Shown piece by piece: positions 3,587 to 56,749 of a stretch of DNA of 64,000 bases. The number at the start of each line of letters is the position of its first letter. Position 1 is the stretch's first letter. Both the position numbers and the translations under genes were made by a program. This stretch comes from Pelomyxa schiedti (taxonomy: Eukaryota > Protista > Evosea), in NCBI GenBank assembly GCA_020536535.1, contig JAHLWZ010000644.1:17917-81916 (forward strand), in the 5' to 3' direction. The notes beneath the pieces are model-generated. The model ran no database searches, was not told the DNA's origin, and saw nothing but the letters and a program-made list of their open reading frames with translations.

Positions 3587-5423
3587 ATGGCCCTTGCCTC
3601 AGGCAAAGAATACTTTGAGAATAACTTCCAAAGCACACTCACAAAAGCAGCACTGCAGTCAGCATCAGTGGTGATGCCACAACCATTAACAAAAACACGG
3701 TCAACCAAAGAAGAAATTCCACAACAGGGACAACCAAATTCCTCCACAACCACGGTTTCGGGACCTATAACGGCCGCACCAATAGCACTCACGTCTTCCT
3801 TGGATACCCCACCAACACCACCAGCACTCCCGTTAAGACCACTATCGCTTGCACCAAAACTGGATTCTGATGCTGTTTCTGCCACCGCTGCTACCACAAG
3901 AACACTTGTGGTGAGCCCTGCTGCAACAACACCCTTTCAAATTCAAGTGGCCAACGCAGAACAAACGTGTTTTTGGCTTGACTCTATTGGTGTGGATGAC
4001 GACTGCCTGAAAATCATCAGAGCGAACAAACTGAGAGGAAGAACACTTGCCAATTACTCTGTGCAACAATTGTGTGACCTTGGCCTGGTCACTGGTGATG
4101 CAGAATTCATTGTCGAGGAGGTGAAACTACATTTGGCAAGATATCTTCAAGAGCAACAACCACAGCAGCAACAGCAACCGTCGACTGTTATTTCCTCCCC
4201 CCTTGAGGGCGGGACAGCAACAGGTGCCAGCAGACAACAGCAACCACCTGGTGGTATGTAGATGAGCAAACCTCTGGGTTTTTTTTTCTTCTAACCACTT
4301 TCTTTTTTTCAGTGGGAGCAGCACCTCTTTTCAGTGCTGGGATGAGCTACAAGTGCTTTGCCTTTGTTGTTGGAAACGAATCATACGGAAGGCGTTCCCT
4401 CAAAAACGCCATCAATGATGCGGAATCTATTTATGAGGTAAGTCTTTCTTTCCTCTTTTTCCATTGTATGACAAACAATCCCTCAGTTCTTGAAGACCAA
4501 ATGCCAATTTGAGGTTGTCTGCCACAAAAACATCCCAAATCTCGAAGTCTTTGATGTAAACTTGCGAAAATTCAAAGAAACACTGATCAAGCAAAAGAGG
4601 GCAGGAAACAAGGTTTGTGTGTTTGTGCGTCTGTGGCGAACTTGTTTGTGTGGGAATTGGCCCGGCAGCCTGATAAGTTTCATCACTATATGATCAGGTT
4701 GCCAGCATATTTTATTTTGCAGGACATGGAAGGCAAGTGGAAGGGCACAACTTCCTGCTGATGACAGATGACGAGACTGCTTTCGAGGAGACCACTTACG
4801 ACCTCATGGAGATCAAAGCACCGATGCTTGGCTCTGTGATTGACGGAATGAAGAGGTACTCTGACCTCACAATCGGCATTCTTGATGCCTGCCGCCAATC
4901 CAATGACAAGACTGCCTTCAAGGTGACGAGATTTGATTTTTCTTATTCCAGCACTAATGATCTCTTGAAATTGGCCAGACACGTGGATCAGACCCGACAA
5001 CCGAACTCCAACTGACGAAAGAAGATTTTCGCGCTGGGTGCATTTTGATTTACCCAACAAGCCCAGGTTTTTCCCCTCTCACCCCATATTATTCAACAGC
5101 CACTCACTTCTGCCACATGGTGCAGGGAGGACAACACTGGATGTTTGCACGCTGCCGAACAGGCAGAACCATGGATTCTTCACTGGTTGCTTCCTCGAAG
5201 GTTGCTTGCTTTGTTTTGCCTCAACTCCTCATTTGCAACCCCACCCCACACCACCTATTCTTACATCACTCATACATGTGCTCTAGTTGTTGAGAATGCA
5301 CAACACGGCACACCGTGGAACGACCTCGAGTCCGCCATTATTCAGATGGTGCAGACGGAATCTCATGACGAACAGACACCATGGGTCTCAAAGAGTTCGG
5401 GACTTCGCTTTGCTCTCTTCTGA
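3587..5423 (+). CDS. SAM-domain + caspase-like (peptidase C14, para/metacaspase-type) protein
   Basis: Low-complexity N-terminus; SAM-like segment EQTCFWLDSIG...LRGRTLANYSVQQLCDLGL; then AFVVGNESY...LKNAINDA, FYFAGHG (catalytic His), ILDACR (catalytic Cys), HGFFT and EQTPWVS. Splices with no internal stops. Confidence 0.85.
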
Positions 5424-50218: not shown

Positions 50219-53200
50219 TCACAAGGATTTGACATTGACCACACCAATGCGGGCACTTGGGTCCGTGGTATTGAGAAGAACAGTTGTTCGTCCAAGAGTT
50301 ACTTGGTCTGAGCGGCCAAAGGCTGCAAAAACAACCACTGTAGCAGCAACAACAATGCTGTTTTGTGGGTTATGTTAGGTTGGAATTGTTTGTATAGGTG
50401 GAGGGGAGAGTGTTACCTTGGAGTGGCTGCGTGGTACAGCCTGGTCTCAATGGTGTAGTTGCCGGGTTGGGCATTCTTAATCTATTATAACCGGTTAGTG
50501 AATTGTGGTGGGAGTCAAAGAGCAGCGCACCATCCACTCAACTGGACCATAACCCTGTGTGAAGTTTCTGGACATGATTCCTGTTTTGGGGTTGGTATAG
50601 CATTTAGGAGATTTTTTTGTTTTTGAACGCACCACCAGATTTAGTATGGTTGCTGAAGGAGTTGCACCGTTCTCCTGATGGATCAGTGACAATTAACTCC
50701 ACGTCTTTATTTACCAAACTCAGCTAAACCAGAATTGCTCAGGGAAGGGAAACCTGTCATATCGGTATCCCATGTTAATACACAGCGCAAGTCTACATCC
50801 ACGGGAGCGATCATACGTGAATCTAAGTTAGCACGTATGCTGGCCATTAACCTAAAGGAGATGAGTATTTGAGGTGCATGACGCTGTAACATACCCTTTA
50901 GACTCGGCTTGTTGAACAATGGCATTCAGTTCCTGTTAATAACATCAAAGGAAAATAAAGGAATAGCACAACTTACCATGAGGGAAACAAGTTCAATTTG
51001 CTCAAATCGGAGATCCCATTTACCATCTACGACTTTCACCAATAATTCTATTGCCCGTTTGAGAGACTCTTTTTGGATCACATGAGATCAGATTTAATGA
51101 TGAAGGAAAAACCTGTGTCGCCTTGTTCTGCAACAACTAATGCTAGGTCACGATGTGACTAGATAGGTATAAATATCTTGCTTCATTCAATGTAAAATCA
51201 AGTTACCTGGGGCTCCTCCCCGCGGAGTTGGAGTGCTTTTTCCAATAAAAACTTTGCTACTCTGGAAAGTGTGTGAGAAATTCGTTGTTGGTTTGCCAAC
51301 TACCTAAGTTCGTCGCGTTGAATTAAAATTGAGCACAGACTTCGTAACATTGATATATCATCAAGCTTGAGCTCAGCCAGGTTGCTTAGAATTCTTGAAA
51401 AGGTTAGTTAAGTGAGTTTATGGTAATGAAATACCTTAGAGAAGATGTTGTCACCACCTTGGCTACCTGAAGGAAAAAGGCCGCATTTGTTCCAAGGGAA
51501 GGATCACTTTTAATGGCTGCCAGGAACGCTTTGTAAGCTAAAAATGAAAGTTACAACCACAGGAAAAAATTTTCATGACTCACGATCTGCTGAGGTCCTG
51601 ATTGGGTTTACGAGGGGCTTGAACATTGTAAGAATGTTTTCAGTGGGTGGTGCTGGTGTAAACAGAAATCGTGGATGCTGAGTTGGGGGCTTCACGAGCT
51701 TTTCGGTAGGTGCTTTTGATAATAGTTCTTCTGCACGCCTCATAAGCTCTTCCCTCCTTAATGCCTTTTCTTCTTCCAATCTGGCTTTGGCCTCTTGTTC
51801 TCGTCTTACTCTCTCCCTCTCGGCCTTTATTCTTTCTTCCCGCTCTCTTCTTTCTCTTTCCTCTCTCTCTTTCTGCAATCTTCGCCGACATTCCTCCTCA
51901 AGTCTTTCTGCTTCCCTCCTTCTTGCCTCTCTCTCTTCTTCCATTTTTCGCCTTGCTTCCTGCTCAGCTTTCTCTCTTTCTTCTTGTTGTCTTCTTTCTT
52001 CTTCTTGCCTCCTTTCTTCTTCCCGTCTCATTTCTTCTTCCTTCTCCCTCATTTCCCGCTCTTCATTCTCCTTTCTTTCTCTTTCCTCTCGTTCTCTGTC
52101 GTCAGATCTCGAATCCATCTTTCTCATCACAAATCTCGCCACTCCACCCCTACCCCTTGCTGCCACGTGTGCTACTTCCGCCCTCCTTTGGAGAGATAGT
52201 AGGGCTGGTTTTACTTCACAAATTTTTCTGTCTTCATCCCTCATTTGAACTGCTTTTTCTGCCTTTTTATATTCTACTGCTTTCTGCATCACTCTTCTCC
52301 TCATGATGAGGGTTTCTTCTGCTGAAACTTTAGGTTTTGCAGCTGGGGGTGGCGCCATCTTCTTGGCCGGTGCAAGGACTTGCCTTTCCGCTATTATTTG
52401 CACTTTCTCTATGTGCTTCATTTCAGCCTTCGCCATGGGCTTCATTGCTGCCTTGGCCTTGGGTTTCTCTTCCTCAGATTCCTCGGATACCTCCTCGTCC
52501 TCGTCCTCGTCGGCAAACGGATTAACACCACAACTGTCACATTCCTCAGCTTCTTCCATTATCTCCTCACATTTTGCTGCAGGTGAAGCTGATCGCTGAA
52601 TACGCCCTAAAGATACAGTTCCTGCCTCCGGTTCAGCCGCTAAGTCCAAGTTACCAGAGAAGTCACTCCACATAGAATCGTTCAGAGCTTGAGGTTCTGC
52701 AGACAAAGTGGATTTTGGTAGTTCCGCAACGAAACATATATTCAAAGCATCCAATGATTCCGTTGGAGGAGCCATGCACTCCGTGGGAGGGGGAAAGTCC
52801 ATAAAAGATGTTGTAACGGGGGGAGGAGGCATGTCGTCCATAGATAAGCTGTAACAAGCACGATCCATCGGGGGGGAAGAGGCAAAAGGATCCATGGGAG
52901 GTGGAGGAGGGGCAAAGGCAGCCATGGGAGGTGGAGGTGGGGCAAAGGCAGCCATGGGAGGTGGAGGTGGAGGTGGGGCATATGCATTCAGGGAAGGTGG
53001 GGCAGGAGAACCGAAAAGAGCCACAGGTGCAGGGGTTGGAGGAAACGATGAAAAAGAAACTGAGGAAGGTGAGAAGAAACATGCTGCACTGGAGGCAGTG
53101 GCAGTTGTAGCCATGGGTGGGAGAAAAGCTGGCAGCTGTGGAAGGGATTGTGGAGTGATTGAAGAACTTCTACTTTGAGACATGGGGGCAGATGGAGGTG

Positions 53201-56200
53201 CCATAGAAGGAGAATAAGGAGAATAAGCAGGGGAGGATGGAGGTGGAGGAGCCCTTGCTCGTGGCGCAGACGCAGGAGACGCAGGAGAATATGCAGGGGA
53301 AGCCGCCGCCAAGGAAAAGGAGGGCCTAGAGGGGGCTTCAGCTTTTTTCAGTGTCGAATTGGTCGATGTGCTTGTGGTTGTGATTGGTGTCAATGAACTT
53401 GAACTGGCAGACCAGGATGGCTTCAGTTGCTGCTGTTGCTGTTGCTGGTGCATGACCTGCTGCTGTATTTGCTGCTGCATCTGCTGCTGTTGTTGCTGCT
53501 GCATCTGCTGCATCTCCTGCTGTTGCGGTTGTTGTGGTTGCATTGATGCTAAGACACGGGATGGTCGCTCAAACGGCGACTGGAGATTCAAAATACCACG
53601 CTTGCTTTGTGCTTCATCTCCAATATAACTGGGTATCGTTATGAAAACGAAGTTTGCATTTATGTGATACATACGCATCCTTATTGCCCATTCCACACAT
53701 GACTTGTGTGTGTCGTGGCCTTCCTACAAGTGACTGGGAGTTGTGTTAAACTTACGAAAGGGCATTGAGAGGGTACTGGAAATACAGCCCTGGGTGCATC
53801 GTCACCCGCAAAACCTGCTTTAGTGTATCCCATTCCAACATCTACCATCATTTCAATACTACTTCATAACTTTAACACTTGTACCTAGTACCACAGTTTG
53901 TATATCATCAACTTGGCTAACTTCGCCAGAAGCAGCTCCTAAAAGGTCGGCAATATCTCTTTTCTTCTTCTTCTTTTTCTCTCCCTTTGCGTAGCTTTCT
54001 TTTCGTTCACATTCCTCTTCCGCTCTTTCCCTCACACGCTCTTCCGCTCTTGCCCGTTCACGCTCTTCTGCTCTTGCCCGTTCAATTTCCTCTGCTATTC
54101 TTTCTTGCTCTCGTCTTTGTGCTTCTTGTTCCTTGGTGATAAAGTTCAGTAGATCATTGGGAAATTAGTTGTTGTTTGTTCAGTGTAACCATTCTCTCGC
54201 GTTCTGCTTCGGCAATACATTCATCATCATTGTGGAGTTTAGCTGCATCTTTATCAAGCAAAAGGAAGTGTCTGACAGGTGGCTGTGTGTGCGTGCCGTC
54301 GTAAGTTGTGTTCCACCAAAATAAGCGTCTTTTCCACATTTGGACAACACGCTGAGCTTTCATTGCCTTCTTTTGGTCTTCTTCTGCCTGTGTATTTTAA
54401 AACAAGCTGGAGTTGACCAATTGAGAACCTTTTGAAGGGCTATTCTTTTGAAATATTCGTGACGGATACTGGGAAGGCTTTCAGGTGGTTCAATCTGATT
54501 CTTCAGAAACTTTTTTTTTTTAGAAGTGATGAACTAAAGATGTTACAAAACAAACTTGTTCTAATGTCTCTAAGACAATCAGAGATGCATTTGGTGTAAC
54601 AAATCTAACACACTTTTAGTGAAAGTAAAGTAACAACAACTCATACTTGAATTTTCGTGCAAGTTTTAATATTAGCTCACTGTTTTTATCTGCATCATCG
54701 TAGGTTGTCAGCTCTTCAACTTGCTGTTGTGCCCAGTATCGGCCCACTACCGGGAAAATTAAACTTTGACAAAAAATAATGAAGAGCTTACACAGTGATC
54801 CAGTTGATTCTGGAGCTGATCGTGGAATAATGTATTCTCTCGAAAACTGTATGTCAGCTGTAGGAGCAGAAAAGTGGAATGTGATAATTTCTTGTAGGAT
54901 TGTGAACAATTCAATTTTTGAGTGGTACTTTATGAGGTACCATCTTGTGTTGTGGCAGTGATTTTGCCTGTCACTCGGAATGGGGTACCCACAGCTCGTG
55001 GAGTAGCAGGGAAAAGGTTTCCTACTCTCCTTCCAGCAATGTCTGTTGCATGAGTAAAATACACTTGGGGTGTTTGTATTTGCTGTAAAACGTCTCCCCT
55101 TAACAGAAATACCTCAGTAATGGATTGAAAGGGGAGTACAAACTTGAATGTACTTAGATTGAAGAAAGCACCCCCACTTTTGGCGGAAATTTTCTGCAGT
55201 ACTTATTAGCGTCCTTTGGTACGTGTAATATGGTGTGGACATACTTTGAGATAAGAAAAATCAGCCTTAGTTGCAGAGCAAACAGTGAAAATCGGGGTAG
55301 GAAAGTCAAATCTGTCCTCCACCTGCATTGGTTTGCTTAAAGTATCGGAAATGCCATTATTACCATTGTGCACCAAGAAGAAAAGCCATCCGATAACAAA
55401 ACAGCCACTGTAGACTGAGTTGGTGTGGCGCACACATGATCAATAGCAACGCTGAGGTTTGTCGCGCCGTCATAAATAGAGTTACCATTGATGAAATTAA
55501 CAATTTTCTCTGATTCTGAGGCCTGCTCTATTTAGTGATGTGTACATAAACTCAGGATACATACCATAAAGCTTGCCTCATTAATTATTGCTTCAGAGAA
55601 AATCACTACACTGACTGGAGTCCTGCCCAAAACACTCAATGATTTGATGAAATCAAATTCTCTGACAAAAGGTGCGTTTTAGTCACAATCAGACACTCAT
55701 GTGAGATACAGTTTTTTATCGAAGTCCGCGCGGGAGCGAGAGGAATCCCAGAGCAGCACCCATTTTTTGAAAGTCACCTTGTCAGTGCGAATTCCACCGA
55801 AGTTGCTCAAATCTGCCATCTCTTGGACACACCAAAACACAGAATCTTCTTCTCCGGAGAGGGAGTTAGACTGAGCACCAGTAAGGACAGTGACTTGCGA
55901 GCTTTCTGAGCACTGTGGGATGCCATCTATGAACGTACGCCCTGATAGAGAGGTATTGTGCAATTCAAATTCAAAAGACCATTCACTTGTTGCAGCAGTA
56001 TTGGCAGAAGGTAATAGGCGCATTTGTTGTGAGGAAACCAAGTTGTGAAGTGTAATCACTGGCGACTTAGAACTGCTTGCAGCCATTACCGTTGCCTGGG
56101 GCAGTGTAAATAAATAAATAAAAAAAAAAGGTACCTATACAGGAAAAGTACCTTGAAACGGTATGCGTGAAGTGTTGCATCGACTGATAAGGGAAAAGTA

Positions 56201-56749
56201 TAGGATGCAGTGTTATCGTTGACAAGCAAATCTTGGGTGAAGGACACTTTAACAACGCGGGTGGCACCCACTAAAAACGGGAAGACCCTCACTCGAAACA
56301 CATTCCCGGAAACCTGCTCTGCAATTGCAACACCACGTTTCTCCCTTACCTAGAGCCAATATCATATTAGAGTTTTGATAATAACGACTTTGTTGGGAAT
56401 AACCTCCGCTTCGAATGTAGCTCTTGCCTTCTCCTTTTCAACAACGACAGCATCAACAAGTTCCCCTTTATTTGTATTAATGGAAGAAAGGGAAGAGAGG
56501 AAAGAACAAAGCAGAAGAACCAACAGGCAAACCATTAACATCCACAGCATAAGAGCAGACTGTGCTGTTGTCAGGGAGGGGAAACACCAGCTCGCACTCC
56601 ATCTCCTTGGGCCCTTCGTCCGTCTCCCTCGTGAACGACGCCACAACCGTCGTTTCGCTCACAAACGAAGCGACGCTCAGGCTCACGTCCACCGTCCGAG
56701 GCCAGAACTTGGCCCCGCTGCCGCCTTTCTCCTCCATCACCAACGCCAT
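50219..56749 (-). CDS. VIT - vWA-like - [actin fragment / polyQ / poly-Pro / ER-K helix insert] - TPR - YfaP(DUF2135) protein
   Basis: VIT: ECELVFPLPDNSTVCSYAVDVNGELVDAVVVEKEKARATFE. vWA-like: LLWDSSRS, YDGATNL, LVTPNASLIVLE. TPR: RGEEPQSHRDLAL. YfaP-like: DLRCVLTWDTDMTDVELIVTDPSGE, SRNFTQGYGPVE. Confidence 0.8.
53562..53910 (-). other. Actin N-terminal segment embedded in frame in the VIT gene
   Basis: [70 protein letters not shown] after removing introns 53842-53884, 53734-53776 and 53629-53674. Confidence 0.9.

Follow-up and report, generated by a model that had tools for sequence, protein, structure and literature searches.

An actin stub in the loop of a bacterial-type VIT-vWA scaffold protein of Pelomyxa schiedti is very probably the selected remnant of a whole inserted actin

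A minus-strand gene in a 64,000-nucleotide stretch of the Pelomyxa schiedti genome (C644:17917-81916, where C644 is contig JAHLWZ010000644.1; the window, whose numbering is used below unless another contig is named) encodes a scaffold protein that contains a short piece of actin, here called the stub. We conclude with high confidence that the stub is a conserved N-terminal remnant (residues ~3-72) of a whole actin, which was inserted as intron-bearing genomic DNA into an exposed, disordered loop of a cytosolic bacterial-type VIT-vWA-TPR-DUF2135 scaffold, and that it is transcribed, correctly spliced and under purifying selection. Few known proteins are as constrained as actin, and conserved pieces of it that stand alone within other proteins are, to our knowledge, very rare. 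The assembly searched was GCA_020536535.1 (52,367,397 bases in 5,337 contigs), and homology searches of the host gene were run exon by exon, with single exons as queries. The published single-cell assembly of P. schiedti has 52.4 Mb in 5,337 scaffolds and 7.43 introns per gene, with 98.4% GT-AG (PMC8887013).

The minus strand from 53910 to 53562 encodes actin residues ~3-72 in three frames, with DDIQTVVL at residues ~3-10 (EEVQALVI in host actin), and these frames are joined by exact GT..AG introns (Table 1). Phase arithmetic showed that the stub is continuous with the preceding exon (54130-53885) and with the following 2-kb exon, in which a polyglutamine (polyQ) tract then follows the stub. 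Every stub exon matched host actins (E 1e-10 to 1e-14), and Pfam Actin matched exon B alone, with its 21 residues, at profile positions 8-31 (E 4.4e-6). Over residues 12-72, 49 of 60 positions (82%) are identical to the conventional actin of the host; residues 18-33, 35-44, 46-53 and 55-65 are identical throughout, and T41, Q42, N49 and A52 are residues specific to P. schiedti actin. The 11 amino-acid changes cluster in the phosphate loop (N12V, S14M, M16Y, C17T) and at residues 66-71 (T66N, K68Q, Y69S, I71F), the latter of which would pack on the part of the actin core that is missing here. Phosphate loop 1 is not kept, reading D-V-G-M-G-Y in the stub versus D-N-G-S-G-M in the host, and the second phosphate loop and the adenine pocket are absent. 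In blastp against host actin and in a search of sequences of solved structures, nothing of actin was found past the 21-residue head of exon D, and thus the gene holds residues ~3-72 only, rather than the four subdomains and ~375 residues of a full actin fold.

A preliminary description of this DNA, made from its letters alone, had placed actin residues 1-72 here, in frame with both flanks and split by three normal introns, with the rest of actin absent. These claims are borne out by the continuous frames and phases, the GT..AG borders and the RNA joints described below, except that the piece starts at about residue 3 and not at residue 1. The same description had listed M44, M47 and K50 of the DNase-binding loop (D-loop) as targets of modifying enzymes and the bond between G42 and V43 as a target of bacterial proteases. 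The stub keeps M44, M47 and K50; the cleavage site does not stand as described, because position 42 is Gln and not Gly, as it is in the host's own actin.

In order to follow transcription of the gene, we compared RNA contigs from four single-cell runs of one study with positions 50500-56499. Contigs of three runs (X1, X2 and X3) contained the joints 53628>53675 across intron 3 and 53733>53777 across intron 2. Splicing of intron 1 was read from the arithmetic of record 2 of X1 (688+59+65=812) together with a loose end in X2, TCCCATTCCAACAT, at 53885, whose 14 letters equal 53828-53841. One contig of 2,856 nt spans the stretch between 52941 and exon 1, with the actin exons, the Glu/Arg exon, vWA and VIT all on it, and others connect 52898-51584 with five exons further downstream, both halves of the DUF2135 motif among them. 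The only hole that RNA left unbridged (52899-52940; 42 nt) lies in a proline repeat within one open reading frame. No isoform skipping the actin exons was seen in the RNA contigs, although contigs cannot exclude rare isoforms. The RNA tests set out in the preliminary description therefore came out in favor of a genuine gene, in that all three introns are spliced, both flanks are linked, and the exact joins recur in contigs of three runs, with no sign of a chimeric assembly. Single-letter differences between RNA contigs and genome, which may be alleles or errors, were noted at 50809, 52656, 52729, 52742, 53356 and 54459, none of them in the actin exons.

The origin of the stub was traced through its paralogs. 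By cross-checking the lists of actin and VIT matches, we found that two of them, C266 (4459-5900, +) and C919 (4200-2750, -), carry a complete but divergent actin-like domain directly after the MW(K/R)RR..WW block, with the same block order and insertion point as the C644 gene. A phase-1 intron in the Asp11 codon (G/gt..ag/AT) is common to C644, C266 and C919 and is absent from ~45 other actin-family N-termini of the genome, and a phase-2 intron in codon 52 is common to the same three, occurring elsewhere only in the actin paralog C859 and being absent from conventional actins. At the other end of the domain, C266, C919 and a third paralog, C282 (~5200-5300, -), have in common a phase-2 intron at Glu361, which conventional actins lack, and likewise the KCF/GG exit. 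C282 keeps only the C-terminal ~20 residues of actin (WQSKEE/YDESGPSIVHRKCF), followed by the same GG as in C266, while actin is absent from the loop altogether in paralogs C531a and C940. The C282 remnant is the mirror image of the C644 stub. Since derived intron positions are common to these copies, we infer a single ancestral insertion of a whole actin that was later truncated; in the C644 paralog, ~300 other actin residues were lost. The host-specific residues of the stub and the intron after Pro32, which is common to the conventional actin genes, in turn indicate that its source was an actin gene of this lineage itself, taken up as DNA and not by way of a processed transcript.

A transcript of Mastigella eilhardi (EP01105_P003190 in EukProt EP01105; P0015) encodes VIT, vWA, a WARRMLWF block and an actin-like domain (Pfam E 1.5e-30). 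Mastigella is given as a close relative of Pelomyxa in a paper cited in PMC8887013, and the whole-actin insertion probably predates the split of the two. When more fusions of VIT to actin were sought by a word search, only the Mastigella protein and unrelated actin fusions came up. The simplest history would be one ancient insertion, which is still whole in some paralogs, trimmed to ~70 N-terminal residues here and to ~20 C-terminal residues in C282, and gone from C531a and C940. The nine paralogs gave a star-like tree of block-wise distances, from which the order of the actin losses cannot be read. The view that this is not a fresh retro-insertion is thus upheld, both by the introns and by the presence of actin at the same place in paralogs and in Mastigella, and the comparison of intron positions with host actin genes, which had been proposed as a check, separated the Pro32 intron of conventional actins from the derived Asp11 and codon-52 introns. 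In contrast, the idea that a D-loop module had been captured gave way to that of an N-terminal remnant of whole actin, given the derived introns and junctions common to C266, C919 and C282 and the Mastigella fusion.

Selection on the stub was measured on 60 codons in one lineage. Relative to 12 conventional actins, differences affect 84-97% of the stub's synonymous sites (pS 0.84-0.97) and 14% of its non-synonymous sites (pN 0.14), whereas the median synonymous difference of conventional actins among themselves is 33%. In a stricter count, only synonymous changes on the stub's own lineage were scored, that is, codons used by none of 20-25 conventional copies. This lower bound gave at least 15 synonymous versus 11 amino-acid changes, with ω ≤ 0.22 and a Fisher p of 4e-5. 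Synonymous sites that are saturated while amino-acid changes are few therefore indicate purifying selection on the stub, and the neutral evolution that had been named as a possible refutation was not seen. A recent donor or a recent gene conversion was considered and ruled out, as even the closest among 55 actin-family N-termini has a DNA identity of 72-77%, depending on the exon. Over residues 12-72, identity to actin is 82% for the stub but 40% for C266 and 35% for C919, whose D-loops are ~five residues shorter, while the D-loop of the C644 stub is intact. The scaffold's own conserved blocks show 45-57% identity between paralogs. The piece was thus kept 82% actin-like during a time in which identity fell to 35-50% both in the sister copies and in the protein that carries it, so that the stub alone probably does something that needs likeness to the pointed-end face of actin.

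The host protein is of the type that the preliminary description had named, VIT-vWA with a DUF2135-like end, as the Pfam VIT match, the vWA metal site and the DUF2135-like motif agree. From its ATG at 56749 to a stop near 50219, after ...GVVNVKSL, the gene encodes in order VIT, vWA, the MWKRRLFWW helix, a long loop with the actin stub, a TPR-like region and a DUF2135-like C-terminus. The first VIT exon matched PF08487 above the cut-off (E 9.2e-7), with the second half at E 0.0016, and its translation contained no hydrophobic signal-like stretch at the N-terminus. The vWA metal site is complete, in that WDSSRS, YDGATN and LLSDGF align to the family invariants D331/S333/S335, D402/G403/T405 and D435/G436; Pfam vWA models gave no match on single exons of the gene. 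The W..R..WW helix, the variable loop and TPR-like helices with RILSN.AEL (RILSNLAELKLDD) are all present. At the C-terminus, RNA joints were found at 51068>51113, 50931>50976, 50849>50893, 50704>50754 and 50579>50632, and the DUF2135-like motif is split by an intron into DVELIVTDPSGERC...SGG and ...SRNFTQGYGPVEW, with an exon reading DVELIVTDPSGERCNSFSNHTKSGG. Both halves are readable, and a profile of the first half matched at the gene with E 3.9e-16, while Pfam PF09906 was silent on single exons because the intron divides the 48-residue motif.

Table 1. Features of the stub-bearing gene in the window
Feature	Position	Strand	Description and evidence
Whole gene	50219..56749	-	~1,700-1,800 codons, ~28 exons; open stretches, RNA contigs (X1 records 1 and 2), colinearity with eight paralogs
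Exon 1, start codon and first half of VIT	56538..56749	-	Pfam VIT E 9.2e-7, profile positions 3-54
Second half of VIT	56151..56347	-	Pfam VIT profile positions 76-111, E 0.0016; RNA piece 56151-56347
Exon leading into vWA, DxSxS metal-site motif (LLWDSSRSR)	55710..56094	-	Translation, RNA piece 55710-56094; D, S, S invariant in family alignment
vWA exon, other metal-site residues (YDGATN, LLSDGF)	55362..55521	-	Translation, RNA piece; family invariants D402/G403/T405, F433/D435/G436
Exon with MWKRRLFWWNTTYDG block, end of N-terminal half	54189..54386	-	Variable loop begins after it; translation, RNA piece
Glu/Arg-rich coil ending in actin residues ~3-10 (DDIQTVVL, 53909-53886) and first base of Asp11 codon	53885..54130	-	RNA piece 53885-54130
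Intron 1	53842..53884	-	43 nt, GT..AG, phase 1 in Asp11 codon
Exon B, actin residues 11-32	53777..53841	-	Phosphate loop altered; residues 18-32 identical to host actin; Pfam Actin E 4.4e-6
Intron 2	53734..53776	-	43 nt, GT..AG, phase 0 between Pro32 and Ser33; position common to every conventional host actin gene
Exon C, actin residues 33-51 and two bases of codon 52	53675..53733	-	Complete D-loop; host-specific T41, Q42, N49
Intron 3	53629..53674	-	46 nt, GT..AG, phase 2 in codon 52
Head of long exon D, actin residues 52-72	53568..53628	-	Ser69 and Phe71 common to stub and C266
Rest of exon D, loop without recognisable domain	51584..53567	-	RNA pieces 51584-52898 and 52941-53628
PolyQ	53543-53424	-	Within exon D, then Ser/Pro-rich stretch
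Three FAPPPPP tracts	52982-52893	-	Within exon D; translation
DPF	52892-52884	-	Within exon D
NPF	52523-52515	-	Within exon D, then acidic run
Glu/Arg coil	52103-51747	-	Within exon D
Conserved FLFTP..ENIL block	51668-51597	-	Within exon D, after Glu/Arg coil
C-terminal module exons 50976-51068, 50893-50931, 50754-50849, 50632-50704, 50531-50579	50531..51068	-	RNA joints, alignment, profile search

The first VIT intron (56466-56538, -) was irregular. In the RNA, the loose end at 56470 resumes at 56538, three letters of the joint are ambiguous, and none of the possible placements gives GT..AG; the canonical pair 56532..56466 predicts one different letter (...TTAATGGGG) from the ...TTAAAGGGG seen in the RNA. 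This is either a non-canonical intron or a quirk of the contig. The gene seems to be absent from the deposited proteome. Stretches of the loop between 53205 and 53300 (-) read SPAYSPASPAS...SSPAYSPYSPS and resemble heptads of the RNA polymerase II C-terminal domain by eye only, in low-complexity sequence. Other host pieces were looked for in the gene's own loop with Pfam and with sequences of solved structures, which gave low-complexity matches only.

Bacteria widely possess proteins of ~1,000 amino acids with VIT and DUF2135, as does Balamuthia, and the long single-exon relative C530 (Pelo_6792) served as our entry to the database relatives. An exhaustive HMMER search for relatives in other species with exon 55712-56092 gave five weak matches in many short stretches and no relatives. 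Proteins of Balamuthia mandrillaris (P0013), Ereboglobus luteus (P0043) and Tenacibaculum (P0051) have the same block order as the Pelomyxa gene, with VIT, the vWA metal site, the W..R..WW helix, a variable loop, the RILSN.AEL TPR-like helices and the D.ELI..P.GE...GYGP.E C-terminal sandwich in common. In the bacterial and Balamuthia proteins the loop has ~80 disordered residues, whereas in Pelomyxa it has ~900 residues and the actin stub, the gene has many introns, and no secretion signal is evident. A model of the Balamuthia homolog, which carries no insert, was built with 58 relatives (predicted local distance difference test 83, predicted template modelling score 0.83). Its sole internal disordered segment, residues 685-766, lies after the W..R..WW helix and before the TPR helices and the C-terminal sandwich, and the MWKRRLFWWNTTYDG block of the P. 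schiedti gene corresponds to W672 at the end of helix 634-674, just ahead of this segment. In the model, then, the loop is a naturally disordered, exposed slot of the scaffold. In Tenacibaculum maritimum P0051, residues 634-822 apparently place an N-terminal segment of SusC/RagA type, as in Bacteroidota members, at the loop position, from which it follows that the loop takes inserts in bacteria too. The scaffold had no match among PADLOC defence models and none above the cut-off among curated NCBIfam families, and a literature search found no mention of DUF2135.

A genome search with a profile of the conserved DUF2135 exon returned nine close loci and ~20 more distant ones, and the loop is hypervariable among the paralogs. 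In C1059 (6054-7642, +) the loop holds PH (E 1.9e-7) and Snf7 of ESCRT-III, the latter at E 1.8e-11 over profile positions 4-144 of 171; the exon before it also matched, at E 1.2e-3. The nearest paralog, C531a (~6950-6780, -), has a Qc-SNARE motif that matches the syntaxin 8 core among sequences of solved structures (E 3e-5), with His aligned to the zero-layer Gln and no membrane anchor seen; Pfam found no SNARE on the C531a linker. Among the more distant relatives in the family, Pelo_6792 (P0006 residues 851-882) carries positions 1-32 of Prp6/PRP1_N (GLGRGA.GFTTRSD type), and P0007 (residues 590-725) carries the SNWKN segment of SKIP and a BBP-type KH domain between two scaffold-homologous halves. 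The annotation of P0007 as 'Branchpoint-bridging protein' misdescribes the protein. The C940 loop has RS and RGG repeats, and nothing recognisable was found in the open reading frames of the C427 loop. Thus the paralog search that had been suggested turned up both the same insert (C266 and C919) and alternative inserts (Snf7 with PH, Qc-SNARE and spliceosome motifs). On C531 (250-1150, -), a second, 99%-identical copy of the C-terminal module only lies 30 kb from the first, and is either a segmental duplicate or assembly redundancy. The actin paralog C859 (~430-800, +), with ~ten prolines in frame ahead of it and introns after AGFAG, in codon 52 and after SKRG, may be another actin fusion, and the actin-like domains at C283:27613-28647 (-) and C663:38002-39009 (-), in open frames of 875 and 1,015 codons, may belong to further actin fusion proteins.

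The pattern of what was kept and lost suggests that the stub probably still works as an actin-like contact or bait surface. We favor, at a probability of roughly 0.4, a docking role in which the stub would engage the barbed face of actin or proteins that bind subdomain 2. In the actin filament, the D-loop and residues 61-65, which belong to the pointed-end face of a subunit, enter the barbed-face cleft of its neighbour. The stub would correspond to subdomain 2 and the N-terminal hairpin, that is, to this pointed-end face, and it most likely acts through it, because the D-loop and residues 61-65 are preserved while the nucleotide loop and the core-packing residues were released. It would be shown on a long flexible loop beside three FAPPPPP tracts that resemble profilin-binding sites, and would thereby tether the scaffold to actin, at the barbed face of monomers or of filament ends, or to proteins recognising subdomain 2; the FAPPPPP tracts, the DPF and the NPF of the same loop possibly help docking. 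Several points weigh against this. The whole-actin paralogs let the same D-loop decay, and therefore the family as a whole does not depend on contact between the D-loop and actin; without the rest of subdomain 1, residues 3-72 would probably not fold as they do in actin; and FAPPPPP, DPF and NPF lie in low-complexity sequence, where they may occur by chance. In addition, no ortholog of the truncated form is known in another species, so that the evidence for selection comes from one lineage and 60 codons.

The family-wide mix of host-protein pieces in the loop fits docking and a decoy alike. The D-loop and residues 61-69 are classic sites of limited proteolysis and toxin modification, and the protease-sensitive sites of actin lie in subdomain 2. 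The loop could therefore display the most enzyme-prone part of actin as a bait, such that a bacterial protease or effector acting on it would free the two folded scaffold halves or change their state and the attack would be trapped or reported; sister genes would do likewise for ESCRT-III, SNAREs, the spliceosome and others. This is consistent with hallmark pieces of unrelated core machines in the same loop of the paralogs, with selection for a stub that remains actin-like, D-loop included, with the disorder and exposure of the loop in the homolog model, and with the intracellular prokaryotes that P. schiedti is described as living with in PMC10579272. We nevertheless consider a bait doubtful, since no exon or homolog contained a thioester, macroglobulin, protease, nucleotide-binding or death-type signalling domain, the scaffold matched no PADLOC defence model, nothing links its bacterial homologs to immunity, the D-loops of the whole-actin copies are degenerate, and the stub arose through truncation rather than through capture of a bait. 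Moreover, we know of no effector for the stub. It is unlikely in our estimate that the scaffold became, in Pelomyxa and probably in Mastigella, a multigene family of cytosolic proteins for bait display.

A capping or interfering subunit, which would be a special case of docking with regulation as its result, is a reading that we judge improbable. Here the stub, with one polymer interface kept and the other missing, would join a filament end or a monomer and block assembly, with the scaffold as a steric plug, and the lone SNARE helix and the Snf7 piece would form dead-end complexes. The pointed-face residues are indeed conserved while all else was lost, and the sister pieces are interface-only as well (a SNARE motif without an anchor, Snf7 positions 4-144 of 171), but a pointed-face mimic that lacks the contacts of subdomain 4 may bind too weakly, and C1059 carries a nearly whole Snf7 core and not a half-interface. 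A remnant without any actin-related role, which packs against or spaces its own protein or answers to other constraints so that its likeness to actin is historical, also has a low probability: truncation of a larger domain is how the stub arose, and C282, with its C-terminal ~20 residues, shows that leftovers can persist, while C531a and C940 lost actin; yet a spacer needs no 82% identity where the same region fell to 35-40% and the scaffold domains to ~50%, and ω is at most 0.22. An artefact or non-coding sequence (a chimeric assembly, a decaying pseudogene between two genes, or a recent gene conversion) is very hard to credit. The genome comes from amplified single cells and RNA leaves the 42-nt hole unbridged, but that hole lies in a proline repeat inside one open reading frame, frames and phases are continuous, the exact exon joins recur in independent contigs of three runs, which also connect the two flanks, and synonymous sites saturated against every actin copy speak against recent conversion.

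The whole-actin members (C266, C919 and Mastigella P0015) have the same scaffold and insertion point, and the derived Asp11 and codon-52 introns as in C644; they keep all four subdomains in a diverged form with short D-loops, whereas C644 has residues 3-72 only, at 82% identity. The best structural match to the homolog model was inter-alpha-inhibitor heavy chain 1 (PDB 6fpy; E 9e-23, template modelling score 0.53 on the target), with the VIT-vWA fold of the N-terminal half in common; the inhibitor chain differs in being a secreted vertebrate protein without the TPR-DUF2135 half or a loop insert, at 13% identity. WH2 motifs beside proline-rich profilin-binding tracts, as in the neighbourhoods of WASP, Ena/VASP and formin FH1, may be a functional analogy, each being a short module for the barbed-face cleft in a disordered polyproline region; there is no sequence relationship, and the Pelomyxa module is a piece of actin itself. 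In a foraminiferan (Ammonia sp. P0138) and in a metagenome protein (P0132), vWA is followed by actin in one protein, but the actin there is complete and resembles conventional ones (Pfam E 1.4e-117), VIT and DUF2135 are lacking, and the eukaryotic lineage (Rhizaria) is unrelated, so that this fusion is probably independent of the one in Pelomyxa. The integrated decoys of plant nucleotide-binding leucine-rich-repeat (NLR) receptors are alike in layout only, with paralogs carrying different host-protein pieces at one chassis position. The Pelomyxa scaffold family, in an amoeba host, lacks NB-ARC, LRR or another known immune signalling module, as Pfam found no NB-ARC/NACHT, TIR, LRR or death-fold family in any exon or homolog, and a literature search on integrated decoys in amoebae returned nothing relevant. 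The bait trap of alpha-2-macroglobulin likewise has an exposed variable loop between folded parts, as do residues 685-766 of the homolog model, but the likeness goes no further than analogy: searches of all exons and homologs gave no A2M, MG or thioester family, and the structural matches of the homolog model were ITIH, vWA and TPR only.

Overall, the stub provides the clearest evidence so far of purifying selection on a host-protein piece in the loop of this scaffold family, and, as a minimal reagent provided by nature, it lends itself to asking what subdomain 2 and the D-loop can bind by themselves. If the family were indeed one of bait-display proteins, each paralog would display a selected look-alike piece of a core machine that intracellular microbes often attack or exploit (actin, ESCRT-III, SNAREs, the spliceosome), and the actin stub would be a minimal bait pared from whole actin, keeping exactly the enzyme-accessible subdomain 2. 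Such a family would amount to a eukaryotic system of innate sensing or trapping of a novel type, with the logic of plant integrated decoys on an unrelated chassis. In a family that serves as a bait or targeting system, the actin stub would be the easiest member to examine, since actin assays, actin-specific proteases and D-loop-modifying enzymes are standard.

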